Virus record (IMG/VR): IMGVR_UViG_3300032322_001765
Coordinates: 156,868 to 220,867 of that record
Direction: 5' to 3' (one strand)
Length of the DNA stretch: 64,000 nt
Both the position numbers and the translations under genes were made by a program. Of the stretch, positions 1 through 24,225 are shown piece after piece. The notes beneath the pieces are model-generated. The model was not told the DNA's origin. It searched no databases and saw only the letters and a list, made by a program, of their open reading frames with translations. Numbering within the stretch: the first letter of the stretch is position 1; every line of letters starts with the position of its first letter.

Positions 1-701
1 TAGGTTGTAACGCCATACATTTCATAATTTCTTTTTAATTCATCGGCTAAATTTTCTTCATACCTAATGTAATCGTTTTTCTTTTTACCCAATAAAGGAT
101 ATTGGCAATATTTACATTTAAAAATACATCCTCTGCTTATCTCAATAGGTAAAACACAAGCATCAACCAAATCAGATTTTTGCCATTCAATGGTTAAATC
201 TGTATCATCGTTCTTGTAAGATTTTTCAGCATCTATTGCAACAGTGCCTTTATATTCTACCCAATTTAGATTATCTAAACGTTTTTTGGTTAGATAATCT
301 AGGTAGTGTGATATAGCTTCTTCAGCGTATCCCCAAATTATTCTGTCAACATATTTGGTTTCTAAAAAATTATCATCACCCTGAGATAGGGTAGTTTCAG
401 TACCGCCAATCACAGTTTTGACATGAGGGTATTTTTCTTTTATAGTTTTAAATAAAAAATTAACTTTGTTAAACTTATTAAAAAAAGTAATACTTACACC
501 CACAAATAGTGTTTTGTCTCCGATGTATTTTTCGAGTAATTGCTCAATTTCATTTTCAGTAAACTTGCTAAAAAAATCTATAACTTCTACCTCATAGTTT
601 TTTTTCTTTAACCAAGTACGTATTCTGAATGCTCCGGCTGGTCTCAATATTAAATCGTCATCAGCCATACCAGTAAATATTAGTCCGTGATATAGGCTCA
701 T
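1..701 (-). CDS. Cobalamin-binding radical SAM protein (partial, runs off window start)
   Basis: Own translation from ATG at 701: MSLYHGLIFTGMADDDLILRPAGAFRIR...KTVIGG...EISRGCIFKCKYC; CxxxCxxC motif; paralog of 5002..6480; ATGA overlap with upstream gene. Confidence 0.85.
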   Translation of the reverse strand, partial: MSLYHGLIFTGMADDDLILRPAGAFRIRTWLKKKNYEVEVIDFFSKFTENEIEQLLEKYIGDKTLFVGVSITFFNKFNKVNFLFKTIKEKYPHVKTVIGGTETTLSQGDDNFLETKYVDRIIWGYAEEAISHYLDYLTKKRLDNLNWVEYKGTVAIDAEKSYKNDDTDLTIEWQKSDLVDACVLPIEISRGCIFKCKYCQYPLLGKKKNDYIRYEENLADELKRNYEMYGVTT

Positions 702-1792
702 CGTTTAAAAAATATTCCCTGATTGTCACTAACTAATTTTTGTCCTTGCCACCAACCTTTTTTCCAACCATCTCTTAATATTGCTTGTATTAAAAAAGTG
801 CCACGGGTGTTTGGAATAAAAGATGCCCAAGGACCCATGTACATGTAACTTGTATCAACCGAATTTACATCTGCCCAATGAATTACTTGTATAAGGCTTT
901 TTTCTAAAACAGTGCCGATATGATAAGGGTTACTACCATAATTAGGATGTCTGTGATAGCTTAAATTCTTTTCTTTAGCAATTTCTGAAATCCAATCATA
1001 AATTTCGCTTGCGAATATTTCTCTTTCTCTTTCAAATTCCACACCTATCATTGCCGGCGATCTAATACAGTAGTTAGTAGCTTGTATACCTTTTTCTTCT
1101 ATCCAAAGAATCTTGTCAATTGCATGTCTTACTTGTTCTCTACTTTCTACTGTGAATGATACTTGTGCTAATGCTATGCCTTCTTCAATTACATTCGTGA
1201 GTGCAGATGACACGTTTTTCCAAACCTTTTCTGAATGATACTCTGGATGATGAATACTCATGCATACGCTTGAAAGTTTGACTTTTGCTAATTCTTTTAC
1301 GTAATCTTTATTTTGTAATTTTACTCCATTGGTGTATACAGTAACAAGCTTGTGAGATTTACCGTAGGGAATACTTTGTATCTTTGCTATAAGTTCAGGT
1401 AAATCTTTTCTCATGGTTGGTTCTGCTCCTGCAAGACAAACAACCTGACCAGGTGCAGCCTTGGCAGTGGTTACTATCCACTCTAATGATTTATCTTGTA
1501 AAGTGTTATCAGGGTCGTGATAGCAATGTTTACACTGAACATTGCATTTATCGGTAACTTCTATAGTCGATACATTATTGTAAATATCCCAACATGGATT
1601 ATCAGGATCTTTTTGCGTTATACTATCCCAAAATTCATATGATTTTTCAACCATTGCCTCTTGATATCCATGCGAAGGGCAGGTTTTGGTAATATAGGCT
1701 GAACCGTCAGTTCTATATTCAATTTGAGCTGGTAGTTCTCTATAACATACTTTACACAATCCGGTAGTAAAGTAAGAATTTACTAATTCCAT
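698..1792 (-). CDS. Radical SAM protein, Tes/MJ0619-like N-terminus
   Basis: CKVC...TKTCPSHG N-terminal metal site, CNVQCKHC, LAGAEPT, TNG. Confidence 0.85.
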   Translation of the reverse strand: MELVNSYFTTGLCKVCYRELPAQIEYRTDGSAYITKTCPSHGYQEAMVEKSYEFWDSITQKDPDNPCWDIYNNVSTIEVTDKCNVQCKHCYHDPDNTLQDKSLEWIVTTAKAAPGQVVCLAGAEPTMRKDLPELIAKIQSIPYGKSHKLVTVYTNGVKLQNKDYVKELAKVKLSSVCMSIHHPEYHSEKVWKNVSSALTNVIEEGIALAQVSFTVESREQVRHAIDKILWIEEKGIQATNYCIRSPAMIGVEFEREREIFASEIYDWISEIAKEKNLSYHRHPNYGSNPYHIGTVLEKSLIQVIHWADVNSVDTSYMYMGPWASFIPNTRGTFLIQAILRDGWKKGWWQGQKLVSDNQGIFFKR

Positions 1793-1805
1793 AATTTTTC
1801 CTAAA

Positions 1806-2435
1806 CTATTTTGTTCCGTAAAACCACAAGAAAGTCAAATCTTTTCCAGTATTTTTGACTTCAAATGTGATGTTTTTAAATCCAATTTCTTCAAATATTA
1901 ATTTGTATTTTTCTACAGAAGTATGAAAAACTGGTAATGGATAACCAAGATATTCAAAATAATTTTCAAATTCTTCATGTCCTGTAAATTCCTTACATCC
2001 TAAAGTTACGTATACAGGCATGTTATGTTTTACCATTTTATAAAACAATTTAAATGATATAATTTGTTTTTCCATAGGCAAATGCATGATTGAGTAAAAA
2101 CAAGTTATTAAATCAAATGTGTTTTCAGGAAAGGATAATTCACAGGTATCACACAAAACAGTTTTGGCATTCGGAGCGTGTTTATTTACATATTGTAATG
2201 CTTCACCTGCAATATCAGATCCAGTGACTTCGTGCCCTAAATCATGAAAAAATTTAATTACAGGATATCCAGTCCCGCACCCCGCATCTAAGACTTTACT
2301 TGTTTTTGGTAATTTTGCAGCTAGCCCTTCTAATTGCTCTGTGTTATTAAAGTAAGTGTCTCTTTCAATGTCATGAAAAGATGAAAATTTATTATATACA
2401 CTTGATAGTTCATCGGTTATCTGAAGGTAATTCAT
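1806..2435 (-). CDS. Class I SAM-dependent methyltransferase
   Basis: VLDAGCGTG motif I, GSDI, FDLITCFYSIMH. Confidence 0.9.
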   Translation of the reverse strand: MNYLQITDELSSVYNKFSSFHDIERDTYFNNTEQLEGLAAKLPKTSKVLDAGCGTGYPVIKFFHDLGHEVTGSDIAGEALQYVNKHAPNAKTVLCDTCELSFPENTFDLITCFYSIMHLPMEKQIISFKLFYKMVKHNMPVYVTLGCKEFTGHEEFENYFEYLGYPLPVFHTSVEKYKLIFEEIGFKNITFEVKNTGKDLTFLWFYGTK

Positions 2436-2467
2436 CGTAATATTTATTTCTTAATTTTAATAGGTTT

Positions 2468-3358
2468 TTATTCTAATGTGTATTCAATTTTATAAAATTT
2501 TAATTCTTTCAAAAATCGAGTTGAATCTACATAATCTCCCATTAAATACGATCCGGTTTTGGTCAAGTTTAAGTCTTGAAGTATTGCTGAAACAACTAAA
2601 CAAGCAGAGTAATAATATCCTGAAAATGTTTTAATTGTTAATTTTTGATTTTCTGATTGTATTATTATTTTAGAATATTCATCTCCTAAATTTATCTCAT
2701 CCATTTGCATATAAAAACCTGCAGTGTTTATATTTGAAAAATTTTCTTTTGCTACTTTAAGTTCATAATTTGGAATAGGATTTACATATCCGATATCAAA
2801 TTTTTTTTGTTGGCTTGTACTAGTAGGAATCCAATTACCATCTACTAAGGTACAATCTAGAATTTGGTTGCTTTCATGTATTGTTAAGTATTCATCTATG
2901 TTTTGCTGAGATAGGTTTCTATTACTCCAACAAGTTTTAAAATGAGCTAGAATACTTAATTCATTTTCTACTTTTAACATTTGAAGAAATGGTAAAAATG
3001 AAGTTGCCCCGCAATCAAAGACATAGGTATTTTTTGAAAATTTATATTTTTCAAGAAGATTATAATTTATTTGAGCAGGAGAGTGACAATCAAAAAAACT
3101 AGTGTCAGCTTTTTCTATTTTTTTTAATAAATTTTCTTGATAGTTAATATTATTAGTGCAATTAATTACTAAATTAAAATTACTGTAACCGTCAAAATTT
3201 TCAATCGTGTCACACACATACTCTACATTTTCTTTTGACTGCTGTTTAAGTAAATTTTCGTTTTTTCCTAATATGGTTACATTTAATCCTTTGTCACATA
3301 GTAGTTTTAATATTTCTTTACCTAAATTTCCGTAACTACCTAGCAACAATATTTTCAT
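2468..3358 (-). CDS. NAD(P)-binding Rossmann protein, saccharopine dehydrogenase-like
   Basis: N-terminal ILLLGSYGNLG, LVINCT. Confidence 0.6.
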   Translation of the reverse strand: MKILLLGSYGNLGKEILKLLCDKGLNVTILGKNENLLKQQSKENVEYVCDTIENFDGYSNFNLVINCTNNINYQENLLKKIEKADTSFFDCHSPAQINYNLLEKYKFSKNTYVFDCGATSFLPFLQMLKVENELSILAHFKTCWSNRNLSQQNIDEYLTIHESNQILDCTLVDGNWIPTSTSQQKKFDIGYVNPIPNYELKVAKENFSNINTAGFYMQMDEINLGDEYSKIIIQSENQKLTIKTFSGYYYSACLVVSAILQDLNLTKTGSYLMGDYVDSTRFLKELKFYKIEYTLE

Positions 3359-4452
3359 ATGTTTTTTGAAAAACTTAAAGTGTTTACTTGTTTTGAGTCA
3401 GAAACAAGACGTTGCCCTTGCCACCAACCACGCTTCCAACCTTCTCTTAAAATAATTTGTAAATGCAAAGTAGCAAGTGTTACTGGAACAAAATCTGCCC
3501 AAGGACCCATATTCATCCAAGACAAATCAACATTTTTTACACTCGCCCAATGAATTACTTGTAAGAATAAACCATCTAACAAATATGCAATATGATAAGG
3601 ATTACTGCCACCATTTGGGTGTTTTTCAAAACTAAGATTTTTTTCTTTGGCAACTTGTTCTATCCATATTACAATGTCGCTAGCAAAAATTTCTTGATCG
3701 TCTATAGCAGTGCCTATCTCAGCAGGACTACGAATACAAAAATTACCTGGTATTCTATTTTGAGATTTAAACCAAAGCATTTTGTCAATTGCATATCTAA
3801 CTTCATCAATGTTTTCTACAGTAAATGATACTTGTCCTAATCCTATGTTAGTGTTATGTACTACTAATTCTACTCCGGTGGATATTTTTTCCCACAATTG
3901 CTCTTTATGGTATTCTGGATTATGAACGCTGAGATTTATTGTTCCTAATCCTGCCGCTTCTAATTTTTCAACATAACCGGGTTCTGCAAGTTTTATTCCG
4001 TTAGAATAGAGCCCAATCATTTTATTAGATTTTTCTTTAGCTTCTGTTATTATTTCGAACAAATCTTCTCTCATTGTGGGTTCAGCTCCCATTAAACATA
4101 CATTATTAAATGGAGCACTTATTATTTTGTTAACTATAAAATCTTTTGGTTTATCTTTAATTTTATTATCTGGGTTATGATAACAATGTTTACACATAAC
4201 ATTGCACCTATCAGTAATGTCAATACACACAAGTTGATTATAACCCATAGTTGTGGGATTATTAGGATTAAATTGAGGGGCTGATTCCCAAAATTCATAA
4301 GATTTTTCTACTACGAATTCTTCATATCCATGATTAGGGCATGTTTTAGTAATGTAGGCTGCGCCATCACTTCTATACTCAATCGTCGCAGGTAATTCTA
4401 AGTAACACGTACTACATAAGCCGCGAGTTGGATATGATTTTATTATTTCCAT
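3355..4452 (-). CDS. Radical SAM protein, Tes/MJ0619-like; paralog of 698..1792
   Basis: CSTC...TKTCPNHG, CNVMCKHC, LMGAEPT; near-collinear with 698..1792. Confidence 0.85.
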   Translation of the reverse strand: MEIIKSYPTRGLCSTCYLELPATIEYRSDGAAYITKTCPNHGYEEFVVEKSYEFWESAPQFNPNNPTTMGYNQLVCIDITDRCNVMCKHCYHNPDNKIKDKPKDFIVNKIISAPFNNVCLMGAEPTMREDLFEIITEAKEKSNKMIGLYSNGIKLAEPGYVEKLEAAGLGTINLSVHNPEYHKEQLWEKISTGVELVVHNTNIGLGQVSFTVENIDEVRYAIDKMLWFKSQNRIPGNFCIRSPAEIGTAIDDQEIFASDIVIWIEQVAKEKNLSFEKHPNGGSNPYHIAYLLDGLFLQVIHWASVKNVDLSWMNMGPWADFVPVTLATLHLQIILREGWKRGWWQGQRLVSDSKQVNTLSFSKNI

Positions 4453-5009
4453 TATTGTTCCTTAATAATTCCAAAAAAATTGAATAGATATTTAGGTTTA
4501 AATCCGCAGTTTATGCCGCCATGCCAATTAGTTCTTGATGGCCACTTGTAAACTGCACCTTGGTCTTGAAAATACATACAATGATCTTCTATCATTACTG
4601 CATGTCCTACAGTAGGTTTTGATATATGACATGTAAATCTAGCTGTATTTAGTGTTTCATAATAAGCTTCATTATCATTGCAATCCCAATGCCATGGTGT
4701 CATGTAACCAGGATTAATTCTACTAATCCAACAACTTAATGGATCTACATTTACGTAATCAGCAAATATAGTGACAATTTTTTCATCAAAGTGTACTTCG
4801 GGAAAAAACATATCCCAGCCTGCGTTACCGCCATCTTTTATAAGCTTGAAACCAGCTTCTTCCCAAAGTTTCGCCATTTCTTTTATGCCTATAATTTCAT
4901 CCGTACCTTTGTGTCTAGGTCCTATGTATCCTGGTTCTTTGTTATCTAAGACAGAAATTATAGAATCCCAGTCAATTAAGTGTGAAATATTTCCAATAAG
5001 TTCAGCCAT
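4452..5009 (-). CDS. Putative Fe(II)/2OG oxygenase-like (cupin) protein
   Basis: PWHWD (HxD) and distal WHGG; paralog of 6477..6995. Confidence 0.55.
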   Translation of the reverse strand: MAELIGNISHLIDWDSIISVLDNKEPGYIGPRHKGTDEIIGIKEMAKLWEEAGFKLIKDGGNAGWDMFFPEVHFDEKIVTIFADYVNVDPLSCWISRINPGYMTPWHWDCNDNEAYYETLNTARFTCHISKPTVGHAVMIEDHCMYFQDQGAVYKWPSRTNWHGGINCGFKPKYLFNFFGIIKEQ

Positions 5010-6480
5010 TTTTTAATTTATCTATCAAGGGGGTAAAATAATCAGTTATTGGATTATCAATTGTTCCTAACTTATAATCTACGTTATCTTTTCTAGGACC
5101 TCTTGCAGTCCAAACTTTATGATTTAATTCTGTCGCTAACTCATGCGCCCGTGCATATGTTAAAATATCTGTCCCATCATTTTTAATCCAGTGTGTAGGT
5201 TTGTTTTTGTCAGGAATGGTATATCCAAATTTTTCTGGGTCTTTATCTATTTCACTTGGATGAATCGTAGATCCTTCATAATAAGGATGAATTATTAATC
5301 CTAAAAATGATGCACCGTAATTAACAGGACAATCGTCTTTGGAAAACCAATCTGCTTGTTCTCTAACAAATGCTTCATCCTCTTCGGGAAGACCAACTAT
5401 ATAACCGCCATTGATTGATACTGTATCTCCCCAGTGTTCTTGCATTTCATATAAAGCCTGCTTTCTTCTAGATGGATTCATTCCTTTACCAGCAAATTTA
5501 CCAGCAGCTGGATGAAATGATTCTATTCCTATATAACAAGATGAAAGTCCTCCTTCTTTGAGTAAAGGTATTTGCTTTGGTTGTGTTGCGATAATGTCTG
5601 CACGAATGTAAGCTTTTGTTTGTAGATTAAAAGGCAATTTGTTTCTTACTCTCGCCATCATTTCTAATTTTTCAATTGAGTCGTTAAAGGTGTCATCTGC
5701 AATAAAATATTTCGTAGTTCCAAACTCATTATAATTTCTAATTAGTTCGTTATATATCGTATCTTCTGTTTTTGTATATCCAGCTACATCCTTTTGTCCA
5801 ATGAGAGGGAACGAACAAAAATTGCATTTAAATTTACATCCTCTTGCTATCTCTAAATTTAAAATTTCATTAGCGTTTATTTGGTCATATTTTGTATAGA
5901 TAGTTGAACAATAATTCCAACCCCAATCACGAGAATTTGAATTGATATCGTGTTGTATTATCTTAGGCCATAATCTTTTTTGGTCTTTTAATAAATCAAT
6001 TGTTTGATTTTCTCCTAAACCATTTATAAAATAATCAGCAGGAAAATCTCTGTAAAATTCAATTTTTGGTCCGCCTAAAATTATTTTAATTTTTTTATTT
6101 TTTTCTTTTACAACATTCGTCCAATCACTAACTTCTCCCATAACTGCACTATATGTTAAACTATCTTTGCTAATCGTAGGACTTTCACCTGATTCTGTAA
6201 ACCAGGCAATATTACAAGAACTAAATCTACTATTTTTTACGAAAGGGGTTCGATATGGCCACCAAGTTGTGGAAAAACCAACCATTTTAGTGTTATCGCC
6301 TATTGCCAAATTGCATATAGTTTTCCATGTGTCTAAAGTTAGAGCAGAAGAAAAATCAACTACTAAAGTTTTAAACCCGTTAGATCGTAAATGACTAGCA
6401 AGCCTGTGTGCTCCATATCCTCTAGACCAAGTAGGAAATGTCGCCGTATCAGTGACTAATATTACATCAAAGGTATTCAT
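5002..6480 (-). CDS. Cobalamin-binding radical SAM protein
   Basis: N-terminal GAHRLASHLR...VGFS...IILGGP B12-type domain; EIARGCKFKCNFC; GIES. Confidence 0.85.
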   Translation of the reverse strand: MNTFDVILVTDTATFPTWSRGYGAHRLASHLRSNGFKTLVVDFSSALTLDTWKTICNLAIGDNTKMVGFSTTWWPYRTPFVKNSRFSSCNIAWFTESGESPTISKDSLTYSAVMGEVSDWTNVVKEKNKKIKIILGGPKIEFYRDFPADYFINGLGENQTIDLLKDQKRLWPKIIQHDINSNSRDWGWNYCSTIYTKYDQINANEILNLEIARGCKFKCNFCSFPLIGQKDVAGYTKTEDTIYNELIRNYNEFGTTKYFIADDTFNDSIEKLEMMARVRNKLPFNLQTKAYIRADIIATQPKQIPLLKEGGLSSCYIGIESFHPAAGKFAGKGMNPSRRKQALYEMQEHWGDTVSINGGYIVGLPEEDEAFVREQADWFSKDDCPVNYGASFLGLIIHPYYEGSTIHPSEIDKDPEKFGYTIPDKNKPTHWIKNDGTDILTYARAHELATELNHKVWTARGPRKDNVDYKLGTIDNPITDYFTPLIDKLKNG

Positions 6481-6995
6481 ACGTAGCCTAAAAAATGATA
6501 CAAGTATTGTTTTTTAAAACCACAATTAGAAGCACCGTGCCAATCTAAAAAGTTATTCCATTTAATTATAGTATTTTTTGATTGCATGTAGTAGGATTTA
6601 TCTTCGATCATTAATAATTGACCATAAGCCGGATCATGTATAAAACAAGTATATCTAACAAGTTTTCCTAATTTATTATATTCACTTAAATTGTCATCAA
6701 CGTCTTGGTGCCATGGTGCATTTTTTCCCGGTCTTAGACAGCTTATCCAAGAACGGATAGGCTTACAATTTACAATTTGTGAAAATTTATTTTCAACCTC
6801 TTTATTGTAATGTAAATTTGGATAATAATTTATCCACTCAACTTGCACCGATGTATATTTTGCAGATTCCCATAAAGTAGATATTTCATTAAATTCTCCC
6901 TTTTCGTTTTTATAAAAATCTAAACCAATCGTTCTTACCTCTCCTTGCATTTGAGATATTTCCAAAACTACATCGTCCCAAAAACTGTCATTCAT
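6477..6995 (-). CDS. Putative Fe(II)/2OG oxygenase-like (cupin) protein
   Basis: PWHQD and distal WHGA; paralog of 4452..5009. Confidence 0.55.
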   Translation of the reverse strand: MNDSFWDDVVLEISQMQGEVRTIGLDFYKNEKGEFNEISTLWESAKYTSVQVEWINYYPNLHYNKEVENKFSQIVNCKPIRSWISCLRPGKNAPWHQDVDDNLSEYNKLGKLVRYTCFIHDPAYGQLLMIEDKSYYMQSKNTIIKWNNFLDWHGASNCGFKKQYLYHFLGYV

Positions 6996-15600: not shown

Positions 15601-16444
15601 TTTCTTCTAAATAACGAATTAAAGGTGAAACACCGACTGGCATGCCATTTTTTAATGCTAAATAAATGCTTTTTGTTTCAGTTAAATTAAAGTCCTTGCA
15701 AATTGTCTTATATCTATGTTCATGAGTATTCCAAAGGTAATCAGGTACTAGCTCATCTAAAAAATATGAACCAATCATTACTAATGCCTTATTATTCATA
15801 TGGAAATCGTTCATTATTGTAATACTATCGCTATCTTCATTTGACCATCGTAAACCTATTCTGTTCCAACCTAACCCTAATCCTTTACTTAAACTAATAC
15901 CCACCGATTTAATATTTGGGTGATTAAAATCAAATTCTATGTCAGTACATGTTGTAACCCATGCTCCGTCGATATGTACATCAATTTTTTTCTCTGCACA
16001 CTCACTGAGTATATCCTGCATATTATTATGTATAGATCCTATTTGTGGAAATGGCATAGCGATAATTAAAGGCACACCATGTATTAAATTTTTTGGGGTA
16101 ACAAGGTATGATAAGTTTAATCTACTGTGGTATCTGTAGTCATCAACTAGTGTTTGTACCCGATGGTGCATATAAATGTTATCGATAAATTGAGTGCATC
16201 CGTTAATAATATCTATACGGTTAAATTTTTTCAATCCATATAACGAATTACGTTTAGATTCTGATAACCAATTTACAAATCGAAACTTAAATCTATTATA
16301 AACCTCATTACTAATGTCTTTGTCCAAACATCCATGCAACACTTGTTGTATTAGAGTGTCAATTTTTTTATCTGTAAGTGGTTGTGGTCTTTCTATTTCT
16401 AAATACTTACTATCATAATCGGGTGCAATTTTAATTCTATCCAC
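15590..16444 (-). CDS. PLP-dependent fold-type-I-like protein (GTG start)
   Basis: HIDGAW and SLSKG resemble the PLP Asp and Schiff-base Lys motifs. Confidence 0.45.
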   Translation of the reverse strand: MDRIKIAPDYDSKYLEIERPQPLTDKKIDTLIQQVLHGCLDKDISNEVYNRFKFRFVNWLSESKRNSLYGLKKFNRIDIINGCTQFIDNIYMHHRVQTLVDDYRYHSRLNLSYLVTPKNLIHGVPLIIAMPFPQIGSIHNNMQDILSECAEKKIDVHIDGAWVTTCTDIEFDFNHPNIKSVGISLSKGLGLGWNRIGLRWSNEDSDSITIMNDFHMNNKALVMIGSYFLDELVPDYLWNTHEHRYKTICKDFNLTETKSIYLALKNGMPVGVSPLIRYLEENGI

Positions 16445-16467
16445 TGACTATTTACTATAAATATTTC

Positions 16468-17136: not shown

Positions 17137-18186
17137 ATGACTTTCTACAATTCTGATTTAAAAATTTTAGATATTGAGCCATCTTCTTTTTGTAATGCAA
17201 AATGTCCTCAATGCATGAGAGAATCACAAAATGGTTCCTATGATTTTTTTAATCAAGTGAATTTAACTGATACTTTTTTTGAGATTTTTTTTCCTAAACA
17301 AGTAGTAATAAATTTAGAAATAGTTTCATTTAGTGGAAATGTGGGGGAACCTACAATGAATAAACATTTGATTGATATTATCAGGTGGTTTAGAAAACAA
17401 AACCCTAAAATTTATGTAGAAGTATACACGAACGGCAGCGTACAGAAACCAAAGTTTTGGAGCGAATTAGGAGAAGTTATTGGACATAATGGTAATGTGA
17501 TATTTGCCATCGATGGACTAGAGGATACTAATCATATATACCGTATTGGAGTTAAATGGAACCTGCTAATGCAAAATGCAAAAGCATATATAGAATCTGG
17601 AGCGAAGGCAACATGGCAGTTTATACCTTTTCTACACAACGAGCATCAAGTTGAGTTAGCTAAACAATTAAGTGCAGAAATGGGATTCGATAAATTTAAA
17701 ATTAAAATATCACATAGAGATTTATTAAATCAACAGCAAAATGAAAAAACTAGAGTCTATCCACCAAAAAATCCTATGTATACACATAGCGGAAATAAAC
17801 TAGATTTTACTAATCTTGATGTTACTGAAAACTATTTAAATAGTCTAGATATTAAATGTTATGCCATAGAAAATAGTAACTTATATATTTCTGCTGAAGG
17901 TTTAGTGTTCCCTTGTTGTCACACGGCTAGCATTATACTTTTAGATGATAATATGGTACCTGAACCGTATAGTTGGATTAGGAAAACAAAAAGTCAATTT
18001 AATCTTAATGAAATTAATTTACATAACAATACTCTAGAACAAATTTTAAAATCAGTTACCTTTAATGAAATTAAAGAGTCATGGAACAAAGACATTAGCG
18101 TAGGAAAAAATGCAATATGTGCAGCGATTTGCGGCAAATGTAAAAATAACAAAAGTCTTATAGAAAATCTATTGCACCATGAATAA
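17137..18186 (+). CDS. Radical SAM protein with SPASM/twitch-like C-terminus
   Basis: CNAKCPQC, GNVGEP, TNG; CYA...PCC...CAAIC. Confidence 0.9.
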   Translation: MTFYNSDLKILDIEPSSFCNAKCPQCMRESQNGSYDFFNQVNLTDTFFEIFFPKQVVINLEIVSFSGNVGEPTMNKHLIDIIRWFRKQNPKIYVEVYTNGSVQKPKFWSELGEVIGHNGNVIFAIDGLEDTNHIYRIGVKWNLLMQNAKAYIESGAKATWQFIPFLHNEHQVELAKQLSAEMGFDKFKIKISHRDLLNQQQNEKTRVYPPKNPMYTHSGNKLDFTNLDVTENYLNSLDIKCYAIENSNLYISAEGLVFPCCHTASIILLDDNMVPEPYSWIRKTKSQFNLNEINLHNNTLEQILKSVTFNEIKESWNKDISVGKNAICAAICGKCKNNKSLIENLLHHE

Positions 18187-19117
18187 ACTAATAAAAATAG
18201 AAATAGCTAATCCTAATGCATTGCGTATTAATTTTGTAATGACACGTAGTTGCACCTACGAATGTAGATATTGTCCGGATGATCTACATTACGGTACACA
18301 TAGAGATATAAACTTAAATGATTTAAAACTGTTTCTTAGTAGATTTACGGATAGAAATACGGCCGTTCAATTGACAGGTGGTGAATGCACTACTCATCCA
18401 CAATTTGAGGAAGTTATAAAATTAATTAAAGACTTTAATTATAATGTACTAGTGGATTCTAACAGTGTTAGGACATTGCGCTTCTACGATGAAGTAAAAC
18501 ATTTAGTAGATAATTGGTGCATAACATTACATCCTAGTCAACATAAATTAGATTTAGAAAAATTAAAATTATTATCACAACATTCTTTTCTAGTGATTTA
18601 TGTTATGATGGATCCTAATTATTGGGAGATATCATTAGACTGGTTTGATCAAATATCAAAATTAAAAGATTTAAAAGTAACACCAATCCGAGTTATGAAC
18701 AATTGGGGAGGTGCAAATTTTCACGCTAATTACAGTGACGAACAATTAGAGTATTTGTCAAAGGCAGAATCTAAATGGCTTTTTACTGTTGAACGAGAAA
18801 CAGAATTAAGAAAAACTCACATGTGGTTAGCGGATACAGAATCTATAGCAACAGACACTACTGGAAACAGGGTTACACTAGATCCATTTAAAATGATACG
18901 CACAGGCACAAACAATTTTTATGGTTGGCAGTGTAAAGCCGGTAATGAATCAATATGCATATTTGATGACGGCAAAGCCATATGGGCAAATTGTGGGATT
19001 AAAAAATTTAACCATTACTTAGAGTTGACTCCTGAAATAATGGCTGAACCACTGAAATGTAATTTTTTAGCTTGTTCATGTGCTACTGATATTCGAGCCT
19101 CTAAGTCAAAGAATTAG
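18179..19117 (+). CDS. Radical SAM protein with twitch-like C-terminus
   Basis: CTYECRYC, LTGGE; CKAG...NCG...CNFLACSC. Confidence 0.9.
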   Translation: MNKLIKIEIANPNALRINFVMTRSCTYECRYCPDDLHYGTHRDINLNDLKLFLSRFTDRNTAVQLTGGECTTHPQFEEVIKLIKDFNYNVLVDSNSVRTLRFYDEVKHLVDNWCITLHPSQHKLDLEKLKLLSQHSFLVIYVMMDPNYWEISLDWFDQISKLKDLKVTPIRVMNNWGGANFHANYSDEQLEYLSKAESKWLFTVERETELRKTHMWLADTESIATDTTGNRVTLDPFKMIRTGTNNFYGWQCKAGNESICIFDDGKAIWANCGIKKFNHYLELTPEIMAEPLKCNFLACSCATDIRASKSKN

Positions 19118-20186
19118 TTTCTATCCACTGATCATTGGGTTGACTTATATCTACATTTTTAAATTCACCGCATACTCTGGCACAGGTAATTAATTTTTCT
19201 TCATTCCATTTTTTGTGCCAAATATTTTGCCAAATTTCAGAATCAATCACATTTTTTATTCCGTTTAGTGCATTAAGTTTTTCTACACCACCAAAATCTT
19301 CAATTAGTTTAGTGTATTGATTTTTTATATCTTCGCTTACATTATGATTGATATATTCAGGATCATAGTATGTATAGGGTATGGAACTTACCCAACAACA
19401 AGGAAGTATGGTTTTGTATGCGTCAATGTAGATTTCTTTAAGATTTAAAACATGGCAGTTAATTTTTGCCTCAGCTATAAGTTGTTTATAAGAATTAATT
19501 ACCTCTTTTGGCATAAACTTAATAGTAGTTTCAGTTGGGGGTTCAATTGTATGTGTATAGTTTCCTTCTTTATCTACAACATCGTATTTTGGTTCTACTA
19601 AAAAGCGTGAACTATTTTTTACAACAAATTTTGAGAAACCTAAACTTTTGGCTACTACCCTACATTCTTCTGTTTGATGCTCATTGTGTTTAAATTTTAT
19701 AAATGTCCATTCGGCGATTCCCCCTGCATCAATAAAAGCTTTTGCATTTTTTATTACAGTATTGTAATTAGTGCCTATCCTATATAATGAATGCGTATCA
19801 ACTAATCCGTCAAGTGCGAAATGAACACAGTGATCTACAGGAAGTGCCTTAGCTAAATCTATCCACCATGACGGCTTTCTAGCTCCGCCATTGGTGTGTA
19901 TGGCAATTCGTACATTTGGATTCACATGTTTGATGTACACACACATTTCTATTAGGTCATCATGCAGCATAGGATCACCAAAATTGCCGCAAAAATATAT
20001 ACATCGGACTAAGTTTAAAATTTCAGGAGAGATGATCTTTTTAAACTCAATTAGTGTCCACTGAGTTAATTTTAAATATGGATTAGGCAACCCACCGTGA
20101 TGATTTCTGGCACACATGGGGCACCTTGCCTGACAATTATTAGTTAGCTCTATGTGAATAGATTTTAATTCATTAAATTTAAACAT
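19101..20186 (-). CDS. Radical SAM protein; paralog of 17137..18186
   Basis: CQARCPMC, GNFGDP, TNG; CHV...PCC...CARVC. Confidence 0.9.
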   Translation of the reverse strand: MFKFNELKSIHIELTNNCQARCPMCARNHHGGLPNPYLKLTQWTLIEFKKIISPEILNLVRCIYFCGNFGDPMLHDDLIEMCVYIKHVNPNVRIAIHTNGGARKPSWWIDLAKALPVDHCVHFALDGLVDTHSLYRIGTNYNTVIKNAKAFIDAGGIAEWTFIKFKHNEHQTEECRVVAKSLGFSKFVVKNSSRFLVEPKYDVVDKEGNYTHTIEPPTETTIKFMPKEVINSYKQLIAEAKINCHVLNLKEIYIDAYKTILPCCWVSSIPYTYYDPEYINHNVSEDIKNQYTKLIEDFGGVEKLNALNGIKNVIDSEIWQNIWHKKWNEEKLITCARVCGEFKNVDISQPNDQWIETNSLT

Positions 20187-20805
20187 TCGCCTTTCCTATA
20201 ATCATGTATCTGTCATACAATGGCAATTCAAGTTTTTTTGCATTATAAACATGTAGTTTGCATTGATCTATAAAATGAGTTAAACTATTGGCAATTCGTA
20301 TGTGTTCATCAATTTTGTAATTATTACTTTGTACTACAATCAAACTATTGTGCGGTAAACAAGTTAACCATGTATCATATTGTTCTTGTGTAATGTGTTC
20401 ACAACTAGTGTTGATAATAATATCTGCATTACTGTGAATTGCACACATATCCGATGTAATTGCTGTAAATCTTCCTTGCATTTCTTCTTTTTTATTCATA
20501 GTTCTAGCTATTTCTTCACAACTAGGATCTATATCGATGGTACGAATATACTTAATAGAAATTTTACTTTGAAAAAGAAAACTAGCAAGAGTGCCGACCC
20601 ACCCGCCGTGTATGTCAATACTGACAGGAAAATTTAAACTTTTATCTTGTTCTGAACTGATAAAACTTTCTAAAGTTTCAATTAACCACTCTTTGCTTTG
20701 TATCTGTCCTCGCCAAAAGGCGTCTAGTGTACGTTTGGGGTCTTTGCTCTCACGAATGGCACACATCCAATAATGCAAGTGTTCAGTGTCTATATTCATG
20801 TTCAA
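20179..20805 (-). CDS. Methyltransferase-like protein
   Basis: IHGGWVG motif-I-like, DIDP, INTSCEH. Confidence 0.55.
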   Translation of the reverse strand: MNMNIDTEHLHYWMCAIRESKDPKRTLDAFWRGQIQSKEWLIETLESFISSEQDKSLNFPVSIDIHGGWVGTLASFLFQSKISIKYIRTIDIDPSCEEIARTMNKKEEMQGRFTAITSDMCAIHSNADIIINTSCEHITQEQYDTWLTCLPHNSLIVVQSNNYKIDEHIRIANSLTHFIDQCKLHVYNAKKLELPLYDRYMIIGKANV

Positions 20806-21792
20806 CTATTCTGTTAACTTGCATTTTGGTATTTTGCTATCTGCCGAACTCACACAGCTAGGGGTTATACACTTTTTTGGCGAGCCAAATAATTTAAAAC
20901 CATCAGTTAATGTTCCTAATGGTTGGTCGTGGCAACTATAACTTCTTTTAATTTCATCTCCCCGTATTATAACACTTTGATACCCTGAATTGCAATACCA
21001 ACCTTTAAAATTATTAAAACCAAAAGAATTAAATCTTTCTGCTTGGTCAAACAAGTACTCATTGTTGTCTTGGTCATACAAGCTTATTTGATATATTTCT
21101 TGCTCCTTTGCCTTTTGGGGGAACCCATTTTGCATTATTGCAATCATTTCGTTTGTGTATCCATCTACAATTGCACTGGCGGTGTCGTTACTCTGTGGCT
21201 TTAGTGTGACATTGATTCCTTTATCATGAAATCTATTACACCTATCATACAACTCATAAAATTGATCTGGTACCATAACTTGATTAATGGTTACGTGAAC
21301 ATTTTCTCCCATTAAGAATAAACATTTTTCTGCAAATTCATTTTCATTCGCAAACTCACTATGATAACTTGCAGTAATTGATTTGCGTTGAAATAGTTCA
21401 GTAGACATGCACCAATTTCCCCACCATTTTTTGCTTGGACTTAAATTAGTAGTCATGTGTATACTTTGGTATGGGGTGATACCATCTTCAAGGTATTTTA
21501 ATAAAGATAATAAATGTTTATAAGCAGTTGGTTCTCCGCCACTAAAGGACCAATGAAATTTATTAAATCTATTTTGCCTTGCTTGAGTTTTTATTGAATC
21601 TATTGTTTGAATGTATTTTTGAAAATCCGAATAGTCAGGCGTTTGGCTATTAGCATAAGGCCAACAATAGCTGCACTTATAATTACAGAACCTACCAAGA
21701 ATCCAACTAATATTAAAGACATCATCTTTTATTAAAGTTTGTTGACCAAATTTTACTATTTTCTCAAATGGAATTTTTGTAAAATCGATCAT
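20806..21792 (-). CDS. Radical SAM protein with twitch-like C-terminus (alternative start 21819)
   Basis: CNYKCSYC, FSGGEP, TTN; CNSG...SCH...CITPSC. Confidence 0.9.
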   Translation of the reverse strand: MIDFTKIPFEKIVKFGQQTLIKDDVFNISWILGRFCNYKCSYCWPYANSQTPDYSDFQKYIQTIDSIKTQARQNRFNKFHWSFSGGEPTAYKHLLSLLKYLEDGITPYQSIHMTTNLSPSKKWWGNWCMSTELFQRKSITASYHSEFANENEFAEKCLFLMGENVHVTINQVMVPDQFYELYDRCNRFHDKGINVTLKPQSNDTASAIVDGYTNEMIAIMQNGFPQKAKEQEIYQISLYDQDNNEYLFDQAERFNSFGFNNFKGWYCNSGYQSVIIRGDEIKRSYSCHDQPLGTLTDGFKLFGSPKKCITPSCVSSADSKIPKCKLTE

Positions 21793-23365
21793 ACTGTTCT
21801 TTGAGCCAGTCGTAGTCATTTATCCTTTTTAATACTTCTGTATCATTCTTGTTAGCCATCGCAAATTCTTTGCCTGCAATAGCTCCGTCAATTGCAAATT
21901 CGCCGTACTTCTTATCTTTGCCTACTGTACACCAAACGTTTAATCTGTCGTTAGTTTCAATTGAGTTTTGTCTATCAATTATTTGACTTGCTAACTTTAC
22001 GCATTCTCTAAATGCACTTCGCCATGTATTGAATGGATCCGTATTAAAATTAGTATAATTACTTAGTTTAATTACAGGTTCGTATAAATTACTTATACTT
22101 GTAGTCATATCAGGTTTATTAGTTTGCATATGTAACGTGTAGAATCTGGGTAATAGCTTTACACCACCGTACCCATATATTAACCCATTAATTGGATTAA
22201 CGCTGCGCCAAACTCTAACTTTGGCTTGTTCATAAAAAGGTACACTAAAATCAAAAGAAAAATCATCAACTAATGATGCATCGGCATCTACTACCCAAAA
22301 ATAATCTGTTTTTGCAATCTTAGCAGCAGCAATGTGTGCTTGATGTATCCCTGCTATGCCGTCAATTCTTTTTGCTTTTGGATATTTTTTAAGTACTAGT
22401 TCAAAATTTTTTTCAGCGTTTGGTTCACCGTAGCTTATGAATATTACGTCAAATTCACCTGGGTATTTGTATTTTATAAATGTTTCAGGACTTCTTCTGC
22501 TTACAGGAATTTCTTCTTTGTATTCTTTGCTAGCATTTGGTTGAAATACATCTACAATTCTTCCATCATTTGTTATAGAACTTAACGATCTACCTAATCG
22601 ATTACATTCAAACAATATATCATCTTTATATAATTCATACTGAGCTTCAAATAGGTTATCTAAATGTTCAAAATCTTTGATATCCCCTATATTAAAATTT
22701 TGTTTTGACAATGCGATATATGCTGCCTGCCTGGCGCCCAATATAGCCCAAACTCCATTTTCAACGTCTGTGCCTAAATGCATCCATCTCCAAAGTCTTT
22801 CATAATTTCTCCAGTTGATTTCTGAAATTTCTTTTACGAATATATCATTTTCCATACATAGTTTGATGCCTTCCCTAAACCCACTTCTCCAAGCTTGCTT
22901 TGGACTTGAATTTATGTTTACATCACTTAAACTACGATTTAATTGTAGATAATTTTTAAAATCAAAATCAACACTATTAGGATTGGAGCTGTTTTCATGG
23001 GTACGCATAGTTTTCAGTTTTTCTACTGGCCAAACTTTGATACCACCGTTACCATACGTATTTCCATTAATGTTGTTTTTACCACTAAAGCTTATTACAC
23101 TGTCGGATACGTTTACGGTATCGACTAGATTCAGTTCAATTTGCAATAAATTATCGTGTACGTAGTTATCACCATCAACAATAATAACGTGACTATGATT
23201 TTCAACAAGATTTGCAACAGCTTTGTGTGCAGTGTCGCTTCCCTTTATATTGTCAACACGCAGTGCATTTGGACAAATTTCTAGTAAGCGTAAGTAATTG
23301 GCTTCTTTGTTTTCCTCTTGATAACTTAGAAAAACGACTGGATAATTTTGAATTTTGAATAGCAT
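21764..23365 (-). CDS. Protein with two tandem glycosyltransferase(GT-A)-like domains
   Basis: Internally duplicated: VVFLSYQE...IIVDGD...GGIKVWP...AWRSGFREGIKL and VIFISYGE...WVVDAD...GGVKLLP...TWRSAFRECVKL. Confidence 0.55.
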   Translation of the reverse strand: MLFKIQNYPVVFLSYQEENKEANYLRLLEICPNALRVDNIKGSDTAHKAVANLVENHSHVIIVDGDNYVHDNLLQIELNLVDTVNVSDSVISFSGKNNINGNTYGNGGIKVWPVEKLKTMRTHENSSNPNSVDFDFKNYLQLNRSLSDVNINSSPKQAWRSGFREGIKLCMENDIFVKEISEINWRNYERLWRWMHLGTDVENGVWAILGARQAAYIALSKQNFNIGDIKDFEHLDNLFEAQYELYKDDILFECNRLGRSLSSITNDGRIVDVFQPNASKEYKEEIPVSRRSPETFIKYKYPGEFDVIFISYGEPNAEKNFELVLKKYPKAKRIDGIAGIHQAHIAAAKIAKTDYFWVVDADASLVDDFSFDFSVPFYEQAKVRVWRSVNPINGLIYGYGGVKLLPRFYTLHMQTNKPDMTTSISNLYEPVIKLSNYTNFNTDPFNTWRSAFRECVKLASQIIDRQNSIETNDRLNVWCTVGKDKKYGEFAIDGAIAGKEFAMANKNDTEVLKRINDYDWLKEQYDRFYKNSI

Positions 23366-24223: not shown

Positions 24224-24225
24224 TT

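Follow-up and report, generated by a model that had tools for sequence, protein, structure and literature searches.

A large uncultured aquatic phage carries a 32-kb island of 34 genes for soluble enzymes, 13 of them radical-SAM enzymes, which is built around a two-headed glycosyltransferase and a methyltransferase. On present evidence the most likely, although still tentative, reading is that the island makes and decorates an unusual sugar coat. Related islands occur in thousands of metagenome contigs and in predatory Bdellovibrio-type bacteria, yet we found no study of their chemistry.

Gene content of the island

The analysis started from a 64,000-nt stretch of the phage genome (the window), for which a sequence-only reading had described a cluster of at least 12 radical-SAM enzymes, in five paralogue groups, within positions 1-23365. 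That observation was confirmed, and the cluster proved to be larger than reported. Twelve ORFs in this interval carry CxxxCxxC with no internal stops. The eleven complete ones hit PF04055 above its gathering score, and the twelfth, cut by the window start, does so in its full-length form. As had been noted, the cluster continues beyond the window start, by 8.6 kb and 11 more genes including a 13th radical-SAM enzyme that also retains CxxxCxxC, giving 34 genes in 11 transcription units.

All five paralogue groups were reproduced by BLASTP and family models, namely the B12 type (g00, g06, g08), the Zn-ribbon_HMPTM or 'Tes-like' pair (g01, g04), the N-terminal-twitch pair (g10, g14), the C-terminal Cys-rich group (g12, g19, g22) and the CxAxCPxC pair (g18, g20). 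Among the other enzymes proposed from sequence alone, the three Fe-oxygenase-like proteins are cupins that keep an invariant HxD...H, both methyltransferases were supported (one by Pfam, the other by fold) and the double GT-A was confirmed by structure. However, the PP-loop, PLP-like and Rossmann calls rest on weak hits only, and the 'kinase-like' and 'SGNH-like' calls could not be confirmed for any gene inside the window, although a GSCFA/SGNH-like gene lies just outside it. The statement that no substrate gene lies inside the cluster was correct, as the gaps between genes are 0-40 nt, leaving no room for a precursor peptide. Furthermore, none of the 34 proteins has a membrane segment or looks like an export component. 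The features are collected below, with the loci used for comparison given as L numbers.

Features of the island and its surroundings, in window coordinates
Position	Strand	Gene	Feature	Supporting observation
1..701	-	g00	N-terminal 233 aa of a 489-aa cobalamin-type radical-SAM enzyme; gene runs on past the window start	CIFKCKYC at residue 192; full-length form in L004 hits B12-binding (35.5 bits) and Radical_SAM (83 bits)
698..1792	-	g01	Radical-SAM enzyme with N-terminal Zn-ribbon_HMPTM domain ('Tes-like')	PF04055 and PF23545 above cut-off; Tes and TrsS models only 68-79 bits (cut-offs 450-490)
1806..2435	-	g02	Class-I SAM methyltransferase; first gene of its unit	Methyltransf_25/11/23 above cut-off; AATAAATA 5 nt before the ATG
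2436..2467	-		32-nt spacer holding the head of the g02 unit	AATAAATA at 2441-2448
2468..3358	-	g03	Rossmann-like protein, function open	Only weak N-terminal hits to SDR and prephenate dehydrogenase models
3355..4452	-	g04	Paralogue of g01	53% identical to g01
4452..5009	-	g05	Small cupin, Asp/Arg-hydroxylase-like Fe oxygenase	Invariant HxD...H in an alignment with a Pfam-positive homologue from L022
5002..6480	-	g06	Cobalamin-type radical-SAM enzyme	PF04055 at 53 bits; B12-binding below cut-off (19.7 bits), so B12 assignment rests on paralogy with g00
6477..6995	-	g07	Cupin paralogue of g05	36% identical to g05; HxD...H kept
6988..8991	-	g08	667-aa cobalamin-type radical-SAM enzyme, probably a C-methyltransferase	B12-binding 32.5 bits (cut-off 32.1) and PF04055; best NCBIfam model KedN5, 141 bits (cut-off 700)
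8984..9643	-	g09	Unknown 219-aa protein; first gene of its unit	No family hit; GATAAATA 4 nt before the ATG
9644..9674	.		31-nt divergent spacer with two outward-facing TAAATA motifs	Minus-strand GATAAATA at 9648-9655; plus-strand TGTAAATA at 9657-9664
9675..11069	+	g10	N-terminal-twitch radical-SAM enzyme	NF033640, 382 bits (cut-off 170); 47% identical to a Bdellovibrio sp. HCB2-146 protein
11023..11799	-	g11	Unknown 258-aa protein	No hit in any library
11792..12700	-	g12	Radical-SAM enzyme with C-terminal Cys-rich (twitch-like) tail	PF04055; C-terminal pattern GW.C ... C ... C.{4}C.C
12697..13617	-	g13	Unknown 306-aa protein	No hit; homologues in L019 and L025
13614..14876	-	g14	N-terminal-twitch radical-SAM enzyme	NF033640, 340 bits (cut-off 170); at least 2771 metagenome homologues, the best 120 being 72-100% identical
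14866..15600	-	g15	PP-loop ATPase-like protein (weak)	TilS_N E 1e-4, ATP_bind_3 E 0.017, QueC-like phrog E 1e-3, all below cut-off
15590..16444	-	g16	Unknown, faintly PLP-enzyme-like; first gene of its unit	Only E about 0.01-0.04 to transaminase and decarboxylase models; homologues in 16 Bdellovibrionota loci
16445..16467	.		23-nt divergent spacer filled by two back-to-back 8-mers	Minus-strand AGTAAATA at 16449-16456; plus-strand TATAAATA at 16456-16463; each 4 nt from its start codon
16468..17136	+	g17	Asp/Arg-hydroxylase-type cupin oxygenase	PF05118, 27.4 bits (cut-off 22.6); HxD...H kept
17137..18186	+	g18	Radical-SAM enzyme (CNAKCPQC) with C-terminal SPASM/twitch domain	PF04055 and SPASM
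18179..19117	+	g19	Radical-SAM enzyme of the g12/g22 group	PF04055
19101..20186	-	g20	Radical-SAM enzyme, paralogue of g18	PF04055; homologues in 38 Bdellovibrionota loci
20179..20805	-	g21	Class-I SAM-dependent methyltransferase; part of the conserved core	AF2 model, pLDDT 81; Foldseek hits O- and N-methyltransferases at E 4e-10; fused to the GT in L027
20806..21819	-	g22	Conserved radical-SAM enzyme next to the GT in relatives	PF04055; 4864 homologues, the best 120 being 68-86% identical; 48-50% identical to Bdellovibrionota proteins
21764..23365	-	g23	Bifunctional double GT-A glycosyltransferase; anchor gene of the island	AF2 model, pLDDT 89.6; top PDB fold hit K4CP chondroitin polymerase; both DxD motifs invariant in 24 homologues
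23366..23378	-		Head of the g23 unit	AATAAATA 5 nt before the ATG; same arrangement before g23 homologues in L016, L017, L019 and L025
31798..32979	+		Class-V aminotransferase (NifS / cysteine-desulfurase-like); possible Fe-S supply for the island	PF00266, 89 bits; link to the island inferred

Promoter motif and conserved core

The TAAATA sites at the unit heads are exactly where the sequence-only reading had placed them. Ten of the 11 units are headed by the T4-late-like 8-mer NRTAAATA, placed 4-5 nt (once 10 nt) before the start codon, with no Shine-Dalgarno sequence. Across the window, 19 of 91 gene starts have a TAAATA ending 3-10 nt upstream, against 0.56 expected, and the spacing is kept in relatives about 50% identical. 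In contrast, sigma-70-like matches inside the cluster are not above shuffles (93 against 111). The tail-fibre-like gene has the same motif (CATAAATA about 23 nt upstream, together with a Shine-Dalgarno sequence), whereas nrdA/nrdB and thyA lack it, and the tRNA array and the operon that holds the MoxR/CobS-like ATPase gene have TTGACT-17-TAYAAT promoters instead. The earlier interpretation, a late tailoring pathway acting on virion proteins, glycans or the host envelope, was partly supported; late expression is favoured by these data but rests on a sequence motif alone.

The conserved core consists of g23, g21 and g22, while the rest of the island differs between relatives. The best solved-structure matches of g23 are bifunctional polymerases (K4CP, LARGE1, CHSY3) and protein or peptide glycosyltransferases (SunS, ppGalNAcT, PBCV-1 A64R). 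In a second phage lineage (L027 and its relatives) g23 and g21 are fused in one 814-873-aa protein, and in L027, L028, L108 and L109 the island sits directly behind tail-fibre genes on the same strand, with no promoter motif of its own in this lineage, an arrangement that also favours late expression and a link to the virion. Island content varies between relatives while the flanks stay 73-90% identical, as expected for a surface feature under diversifying selection.

Cellular homologues are almost all in Bdellovibrionota, where homologues of g10/g14, g22, g20, g21 and g16 co-occur. Both loci examined also hold GT2 enzymes and a UDP-Glc/GDP-Man dehydrogenase; one adds an acetyltransferase and an SDR-like protein, the other Asn synthase and a GT-C (PMT_2). 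Moreover, the phage itself encodes an NDP-sugar epimerase/dehydratase and another GT2 outside the island.

Alternative readings

The strongest alternative, although unlikely, is remodelling of the host envelope, in which the island would change the LPS O-chain or capsule during infection so that other phages can no longer adsorb, the reading given for glycosyltransferases in pelagimyophage hypervariable islands. LpxO/OlsC-type lipid hydroxylases belong to the same Pfam family as the cupins here, and in one cellular locus the GT-C (PMT_2) membrane transferase lies next to the radical-SAM array. However, a direct role at the envelope is weakened by the lack of membrane segments in all 34 proteins and of any flippase, polymerase, ABC exporter or initiating polyprenyl-phosphate transferase, and late-type promoters would leave little time for surface remodelling to act.

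Less likely is a direct, proteusin-like modification of the amino-acid side chains of a virion protein encoded elsewhere, with the glycosyltransferase adding only a cap. The mix of B12 C-methylases, SPASM/twitch radical-SAM enzymes, Asp/Asn-hydroxylase-like proteins and methyltransferases resembles polytheonamide-type clusters, the best PDB sequence match of the N-twitch profile is the peptide maturase SkfB (E 1.5e-7), and the island is adjacent to giant fibre proteins in L027 and L108. Nevertheless, there is no precursor gene and no room for one, no RiPP-recognition domain was detected in the Pfam and family-model searches, and the cellular homologues sit among GT2 and UDP-sugar-dehydrogenase genes, not peptide genes.

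It is similarly doubtful that the product is a soluble specialised metabolite (aminoglycoside-, nucleoside- or glycolipid-like), made in the infected cell for host takeover or against competitors. B12 radical-SAM methylases, twitch radical-SAM enzymes, aminotransferase, SDR and GT are the toolkit of aminoglycoside pathways (GenK, BtrN, AprD4), all of the proteins are soluble, and a relative carries APS kinase and a sulfotransferase. However, no scaffold-forming enzyme (cyclitol synthase, PKS or NRPS) was recognised, and the occurrence of core genes in thousands of contigs at 50-75% identity, together with the island abutting fibre genes in one lineage, fits a structural role better.

Hypermodification of nucleic acids, either of DNA bases (glycosylated or otherwise) against restriction or of the phage's own 27 tRNAs next door, has little support. 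Phage GT-A enzymes can glycosylate DNA (Pyle et al. 2024, cited within PMC12619734), the PP-loop-like protein has faint TilS/QueC similarity, and the island abuts the tRNA array here and in relatives. In contrast, the thymidylate-synthase homologue matches the PHROG thymidylate-synthase family at E 3e-116 and is 68-70% identical in DNA to phage genes annotated td/thymidylate synthase, no hydroxymethylase, TET/JBP or DpdA was seen in the 82 kb examined, none of the radical-SAM enzymes matches QueE, MiaB or TYW1 above threshold, and a late-type promoter is the wrong timing for DNA protection.

Least likely is an accretion of independent radical-SAM cassettes with unrelated roles, for example counter-defence, in a recombination-prone region: the eleven units are separate, each with its own promoter in this reading, cassettes are gained and lost between relatives, and L022, a close relative, has an island with no g23 within the 21 kb fetched, but the same five families (N-twitch, g22, g20, g21 and g16) travel together in phages and in Bdellovibrionota, promoter type and spacing are uniform, and the repeated B12-radical-SAM plus cupin pairs look like steps of one chemistry.

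Proposed glycan pathway

The reading that we favour, tentatively, is a wholly cytoplasmic, phage-encoded pathway that builds and heavily tailors a glycan. The GT-GT-MT core and the GT2/UDP-sugar-dehydrogenase context of the cellular homologues allow the target to be narrowed in this direction, although the acceptor is still inferred. Several observations argue for caution. No nucleotidyltransferase or other dedicated NDP-sugar activation step was recognised inside the island, and about ten island proteins have no detectable family, so that key steps are unknown. No acceptor is identified, and in this phage the fibre-like gene is 22 kb away. The enzyme mix is also the signature of peptide (proteusin-type) modification, and the best-hit models for several radical-SAM enzymes are lipid enzymes (Tes, ladderane-type B12, HpnJ), with an FA_desaturase in one relative and an FA_hydroxylase in the Bdellovibrio locus. 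The island of L022, with no g23 within the 21 kb fetched, also counts against this reading. The enzyme families and folds, the conserved catalytic motifs, the motif statistics, the synteny and the lack of membrane segments are established by the analysis, whereas the timing, the leaderless mRNAs, the glycan substrate, the acceptor and every individual reaction are inferred.

In this view, the core would lay down a short methylated di- or oligosaccharide, or a repeating disaccharide. The shell, variable between related phages, would act on the sugar precursors or on the finished glycan through cobalamin-type radical-SAM C-methylases, twitch/SPASM radical-SAM enzymes, which could carry out oxidation, epimerisation, deoxygenation or C-C bond formation, cupin/2OG-type hydroxylases, an aminotransferase, SDR-like proteins, further methyltransferases and a GSCFA/SGNH-like protein. 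The 11 units would be transcribed from minimal T4-late-type promoters, so close to the start codons that the mRNAs would be leaderless or nearly so, and the product would therefore appear with the structural proteins. The most likely acceptor is a virion protein (fibre or capsid), which would give the phage a variable glycan coat.

Gene content and extent of the island

The region analysed contains 24 tightly packed ORFs, of which 12 carry CxxxCxxC, none with an internal stop. Eleven of these are complete and matched Pfam Radical_SAM (PF04055) above its gathering score, while the twelfth (g00) is cut by the window start. BLASTP and family models reproduced the five paralogue groups proposed in the sequence-only reading, namely three cobalamin-type enzymes, two with a Zn-ribbon_HMPTM domain (53% identical to each other), two members of NCBIfam NF033640 (N-terminal twitch), three with a conserved C-terminal Cys-rich tail and a CxAxCPxC pair with a C-terminal SPASM/twitch domain. 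The observation was confirmed, and it was also extended. Retrieval of upstream DNA (L004 and L010) from the 220,867-bp IMG/VR contig IMGVR_UViG_3300032322_001765, of which the window is the last 64 kb, added 11 genes: the rest of the B12 enzyme, a class-III aminotransferase, an SDR-like protein, a 13th radical-SAM enzyme with an N-terminal twitch-type Cys pattern, a GSCFA/SGNH-like protein, a 2OG-FeII_Oxy_5 protein, another small cupin, an FkbM methyltransferase and three unknowns. The island thus spans 32 kb, with 34 genes and 13 radical-SAM enzymes. Its left flank holds nrdA, a ferredoxin-like gene, nrdB, an endolysin-like gene and a NifU-like gene, and its right flank is a tRNA array followed by a permuted tmRNA.

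Coordinates of the island and of other features (window positions unless another sequence is named)
Feature	Position	Strand
Region of the 24 ORFs	1-23365	
Whole island	-8604 to 23365	
g00, cobalamin-type radical-SAM enzyme cut by the window start	1-701	
Divergent spacer of 23 nt	16445-16467	
Sigma-70-like TTGACT-17-TACAAT heading the tRNA array	about 23404-23432	
Array of 27 tRNA genes	24148-31140	+
HNH endonuclease gene inside the array	25189-25749	
tRNA-Gly	29719-29793	
2OG-Fe(II) oxygenase (P4H-type) fusion protein, first	29741-31051	
Class-V aminotransferase (NifS-like)	31798-32979	
Permuted tmRNA	33007-33412	+
Starts of eight genes outside the island with TAAATA	33404, 34051, 36665, 58982, 59695, 62096, 62382, 62658	
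PstS (phosphate-binding protein)	34051-35106	+
Phosphate-selective porin O/P homologue	35167-36573	+
Peroxiredoxin	39876-40421	
2OG-Fe(II) oxygenase (P4H-type) fusion protein, second	42463-43665	
Tail-fibre-like gene	45602-51094	
MoxR/CobS-like AAA ATPase	51708-52871	+
DUF2201 metallopeptidase-like/vWA protein	53228-54508	+
NifU-like gene	L010 9102-9482 (window -9503..-9123)	
Ferredoxin-like gene	L010 3685-4353	
Tandem radical-SAM genes, Bdellovibrionales MAG chromosome OZ220490.1 (L039/L110)	locus positions about 2400-13900	
Island of the close relative L022 (JGI 3300027772 contig, 162 kb)	1-19838	

Catalytic integrity was examined next, since loss of catalytic residues in most members had been named as a refuting condition; no such loss was found. 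All 13 radical-SAM enzymes have an intact motif and score 31-83 bits on PF04055 against a cut-off of 29.5. Four small cupins and their relatives share an invariant HxD...H, and both DxD motifs of the glycosyltransferase g23 are invariant in 24 homologues.

Within the cobalamin-type group, an N-terminal B12-binding domain (PF02310, cut-off 32.1 bits) was detected in full-length g00 (35.5 bits) and in g08 (32.5 bits), whereas g06 scored only 19.7 bits and is assigned by paralogy; cobalamin binding is in each case inferred from sequence. The N-twitch enzymes g10 and g14 score 382 and 340 bits on NF033640 against a curated cut-off of 170, with N-terminal cysteines C9, C27, C66 and C69 invariant and C28 nearly so, and the 13th radical-SAM enzyme is linked to them by its N-terminal Cys pattern alone. 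In contrast, the ‘Tes-like’ and ‘KedN5-like’ labels are resemblances only, with scores 5- to 7-fold below the curated cut-offs. The Zn-ribbon enzymes g01 and g04 score 68-81 bits, over about 120 core residues only, on the tetraether lipid synthase Tes (NF045702, cut-off 450) and TrsS (NF045646, cut-off 490) models, with which they share only the Zn-ribbon_HMPTM domain and the radical-SAM core. Likewise, g08 scores 141 bits over residues 67-368 on the KedN5-family B12 C-methyltransferase model (NF033712, cut-off 700).

PHROGs, NCBIfam and lenient Pfam scans of ten non-radical-SAM genes returned almost nothing, and roughly ten island proteins are unannotated. PDB sequence searches with g13 (a protein without a detectable family), g20 (of the CxAxCPxC pair), the radical-SAM enzyme g22 and g23, and with the g23 and g21 profiles, gave nothing useful, and the N-twitch profile found only SkfB (E 1.5e-7) and GDGT-MAS, weakly.

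A hydropathy scan of the 34 proteins found none with a convincing membrane segment, only three isolated 19-residue peaks of 1.69-1.76 inside soluble enzymes. The membrane steps that define O-antigen and capsule loci were not recognised: no flippase or ABC exporter, polymerase or ligase, or initiating polyprenyl-P transferase family was found in the Pfam scans. Gaps between genes are 0-40 nt and the genes mostly overlap, so that no precursor peptide is encoded inside, and no RRE or peptide family was detected; the features of proteusin- or sactipeptide-type RiPP clusters are hence lacking, although a precursor encoded elsewhere cannot be excluded. A 75-aa ORF between the glycosyltransferase and the first radical-SAM gene in L027, a contig of a second phage lineage, was considered as a possible precursor peptide but has no counterpart in the window. 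On this evidence the pathway is cytoplasmic, and acts either on something encoded elsewhere or on metabolites.

The phage also carries genes that might support the island. NifU-like, NifS-like, ferredoxin-like and peroxiredoxin genes lie around it and could supply and protect Fe-S clusters, and an NDP-sugar epimerase/dehydratase, another GT2 and another methyltransferase are encoded elsewhere in the window; a link between these genes and the island is plausible but inferred. The two P4H-type oxygenase fusions lie outside the island, one having a methyltransferase domain and the other an N-terminal domain that PHROGs labels ‘ferrochelatase’. The first ORF overlaps tRNA-Gly, so its true start may lie further downstream. 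The MoxR/CobS-like ATPase, paired with the DUF2201 protein, is 51% identical to that of Pseudomonas jumbo phage PA5oct, and a link to cobalamin for the B12 radical-SAM enzymes is no more than conjecture. PstS and the porin homologue (179 bits) form a two-gene phosphate-uptake module. The thymidylate-synthase (ThyA) homologue matches the PHROG thymidylate-synthase family at E 3e-116 and is 68-70% identical in DNA to phage genes annotated td/thymidylate synthase, and, of the base-activating enzymes of phage DNA hypermodification pathways (5-hmC, 5-hmdU or 7-deazaguanine), no dCMP/dUMP hydroxymethylase, TET/JBP, or DpdA with QueC/D/E was seen in the 82 kb examined out of at least 221 kb.

The 27 tRNA genes cover every amino acid except Phe, and the layout of an HNH gene with gaps recurs next to g23 homologues in the relatives L017, L019 and L025. 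The permuted (two-piece) tmRNA matched Rfam RF04321 and RF01850 at 137 bits, with tag peptide ANAANDEVYALAA. Permuted tmRNAs are known from Alphaproteobacteria, some Betaproteobacteria and some Cyanobacteria, so this may hint at the host.

Promoter-like sequences at the unit heads

The 34 genes form 11 units of alternating orientation. Ten heads carry NRTAAATA ending 4-5 nt (once 10 nt) before the start codon, with no Shine-Dalgarno sequence, the FkbM unit being the exception. The divergent spacers are only 23-40 nt, and the 23-nt spacer is filled exactly by two back-to-back 8-mers. Over 91 gene starts in the 82.6 kb examined, 19 have a sense TAAATA ending 3-10 nt upstream, against 0.56 expected. 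The arrangement recurs before g23 homologues and other unit heads in relatives only about 50% identical in protein. The N-terminus of g23 is conserved from residue 3, so its annotated start codon is right.

Other genes differ. The tail-fibre-like gene has CATAAATA about 23 nt upstream, followed by a Shine-Dalgarno sequence, whereas nrdA, nrdB and thyA lack the motif, and the tRNA array and the operon that holds the MoxR/CobS-like ATPase gene have TTGACT-17-TAYAAT promoters. Sigma-70-like matches inside the island do not exceed shuffles. Outside the island, eight more genes have TAAATA ending 3-8 nt before the start codon and no Shine-Dalgarno sequence, although many neighbours have clear AGGAG sites; in three cases (62096, 62382 and 62658) the TAA is also the stop codon of the gene before, suggesting a class of leaderless or re-initiated mRNAs.

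As in the gp55-dependent T4 late promoter (TATAAATA), the 8-mer ends in TAAATA and has no -35 element. However, the first two positions vary (NR), and exact TATAAATA is rare, with 3 sites in 64 kb against 14 expected, so the working consensus is looser than in T4. The PA5oct paper gave no late-promoter parallel. We infer a minimal late-type promoter whose distance of 4-5 nt from the ATG implies leaderless or near-leaderless mRNAs, late timing being deduced here without expression data.

The conserved core, its variable shell and cellular counterparts

The model of g23 (533 aa) is confident (AF2, pLDDT 89.6) and shows two Rossmann-like GT-A domains, each with a DxD motif (D64xD66 and D360xD362), although Pfam alone is below threshold. 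The best solved match in Foldseek is the bifunctional chondroitin polymerase K4CP of E. coli K4 (E 7e-7), followed by SunS, RmlT, WrtF, LARGE1, polypeptide GalNAc-transferases and the PBCV-1 capsid-glycan enzyme A64R; the probability is 1.0 to K4CP, SunS, RmlT and WrtF. Viral fold matches include chlorovirus proteins, the mycobacteriophage Che8 GT and phage GT-FkbM fusions. The second core protein, g21 (208 aa), has a predicted class-I methyltransferase fold. In the second phage lineage (L027, L028, L108 and L109) g23 and g21 are fused into one protein of 814-873 aa, giving a GT-GT-MT unit as in A064R. The radical-SAM enzyme g22 follows the GT in the relatives L017, L019, L025 and L006.

The core genes are common in aquatic metagenomes, with at least 3264 homologue clusters for g23, at least 2771 for g14 and 4864 for g22, typically 50-75% identical among the best hits and on contigs up to 360 kb. 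Megablast of the island against 50,697 phage records gave no match. With tblastn, g08 gave no hit, g10 four weak hits and g23 only Ralstonia jumbo phage RsoM2USA, where every neighbour is annotated ‘hypothetical’. This culturable phage has the GT, the g21-like gene and an N-twitch radical-SAM enzyme.

Relatives keep the flanks, the NifU-like protein being 90% identical and the FkbM methyltransferase 46-77%, but the interior differs widely. L014 has no radical-SAM enzyme between FkbM and g23, L013 has one, and L015 and L016 have three. The close relative L022 (g10 78%, g14 73% identical) has eight, plus TauD, FA_desaturase, two Asp/Arg hydroxylases, a Sulfotransfer_2 gene and an APS kinase, with no g23 within the 21 kb fetched; sulfation may be one of the variable decorations.

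A scan of one genome per species with an N-twitch alignment returned 77 loci, nearly all from Bdellovibrionota. The same loci carry homologues of g22 (40 loci, up to 50% identity), g20/g18 (38), g12, of the Cys-rich-tail group (25), g21 (22) and g16, a faintly PLP-enzyme-like protein (16). Tandem arrays of up to seven N-twitch paralogues also occur, and several Bdellovibrionota genomes hold two or more such loci. Both loci examined in detail have a glycan context. In the isolate Bdellovibrio sp. HCB2-146, the two 21-kb loci fetched show eight radical-SAM genes, four Pfam-confident GT2 enzymes (plus one faint GT hit), UDP-Glc/GDP-Man dehydrogenase, an acetyltransferase, an SDR-like protein and FA_hydroxylase, and the locus sits beside a 1959-aa Peptidase_S74 fibre protein. 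In the Bdellovibrionales MAG chromosome, eight tandem radical-SAM enzymes (seven N-twitch paralogues and one g22-like) are followed by Asn synthase, a ulvan-lyase-like protein, GT2, UDP-sugar dehydrogenase and a GT-C (PMT_2). This is the strongest evidence that these radical-SAM families work on sugars. Fibre genes as regular neighbours of the cellular clusters were also considered, but adjacency was seen in only 3 of the 77 loci and is weak evidence.

Comparison with described systems and interpretation

Literature searches for a described phage or Bdellovibrio radical-SAM/GT cluster found only a passing mention of radical-SAM cassettes, inside a hypervariable host-recognition cluster with tail fibres and glycosyltransferases in pelagimyophages and cyanomyophages (Zaragoza-Solas et al. 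2020, PMC7029224). This is the closest published description; it proposes host O-chain modification and did not go further. Both are large non-syntenic islands in big aquatic myophage-type genomes, with glycosyltransferases and radical-SAM cassettes that differ between close relatives; an Asp/Asn beta-hydroxylase is a core gene there, and in the L027 lineage the island directly follows tail-fibre genes. The pelagimyophage cluster lies in the structural module, between VrlC and gp14, and contains tail fibres. The present island has 13 radical-SAM enzymes and no fibre gene inside, fibres being adjacent only in the L027 lineage, and its flanks are a NifU-like gene and a tRNA array on a contig of at least 221 kb. 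The cultured pelagimyophage was not among the tblastn hits for g08, g10 or g23.

The chlorovirus PBCV-1 A064R and giant-virus virion glycosylation clusters are likewise virus-encoded, cytoplasmic and independent of host export, and share the three-activity GT, GT and methyltransferase unit, fused in the L027-type protein. However, similarity is at fold level only (TM about 0.2-0.4, 9-15% identity), and no giant-virus glycan cluster is known to hold radical-SAM enzymes. Attachment of the glycan to a structural protein of the virion, which defines such systems, is inferred here only from the GT-GT-MT architecture, the promoter type and the adjacency to fibre genes in one lineage. In mycobacteriophages, Che8-type GT-A enzymes plus a methyltransferase reportedly modify capsid and tail proteins (Freeman et al. 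2023, cited in PMC12619734), but those systems have 2-4 genes and no radical-SAM, B12 or Fe-oxygenase tailoring. The bifunctional polymerases K4CP, LARGE1 and CHSY have two GT-A domains in one chain, each with DxD, and the sulfotransferase and APS kinase genes of L022 offer a further parallel; identity is nevertheless about 10%, with no sequence-level hit in PDB, and polymerising activity or any sugar specificity of g23 would be by analogy only. In aminoglycoside and deoxysugar pathways (GenK, BtrN, AprD4, DesII), B12-type C-methylases and twitch-domain radical-SAM enzymes work beside aminotransferases, SDRs and GTs, but no phage enzyme reaches the cut-off of any characterised family, and the N-terminal position of the twitch domain defines a separate, uncharacterised family (NF033640).

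The interpretation in the sequence-only reading is partly supported. Its inference of late expression is supported by motif statistics, by conservation, by comparison with early-type genes and by co-orientation with fibre genes in a sister lineage, but it is not proven. Its target, given broadly as virion proteins, glycans or the host envelope, can be narrowed to a glycan built in the cytoplasm, with a virion protein as the most likely acceptor, although we hold this combined statement only tentatively. The families and predicted folds, the intact catalytic motifs, the motif enrichment and the gene neighbourhoods are direct outcomes of the analysis, whereas the timing, the leaderless mRNAs, the glycan substrate, its attachment to a virion protein, cobalamin binding and the catalytic activities are inferred.

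Among the alternatives, all of which remain open, host-envelope remodelling survives best but appears unlikely. Direct peptide modification is less likely, closely followed by a soluble metabolite. Nucleic-acid modification and an assembly of unrelated cassettes are improbable. A lipid target, suggested by Tes-, ladderane- and HpnJ-like best hits, was set aside because those scores are 5- to 50-fold below the cut-offs and the conserved core is GT-GT-MT.

A more speculative and rather unlikely possibility is that radical-SAM-tailored glycans are an undescribed class of surface decoration, shared by two kinds of bacterial predator, large aquatic phages and Bdellovibrionota, and placed on their prey-attachment fibres. 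Arrays of up to 13 radical-SAM enzymes would then generate strain-specific sugar chemistry (C-methyl, deoxy, epimerised or cross-linked sugars) that no known glycan pathway produces, and in the phage the whole set would be expressed as leaderless late mRNAs from 8-bp promoters.

Hypervariable viral glycosylation or host-recognition islands are already known; what is new is a version dominated by radical-SAM enzymes, its uniform leaderless-type promoters and its kinship with Bdellovibrionota clusters. If the favoured reading is right, this is the most radical-SAM-rich gene cluster that we know of in a virus, and would be the entry point to carbohydrate radical chemistry that has not been described. 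Five radical-SAM families are involved; one (NF033640) has a curated model but is not known to have a characterised function, and none of the three tested (N-twitch profile, g20 and g22) has a close solved relative. The promoter architecture offers a testable case of systematic leaderless late expression in a phage. Thirteen Fe-S enzymes, three or four of them predicted to be cobalamin-dependent, are a notable iron and B12 demand for infection in seawater, which fits the NifU-, NifS- and ferredoxin-like genes nearby. Given the abundance of the core genes, any function would apply to a widespread, uncultured phage group, and a variable virion glycan would bear on host range, on recognition by defence systems and on grazing.
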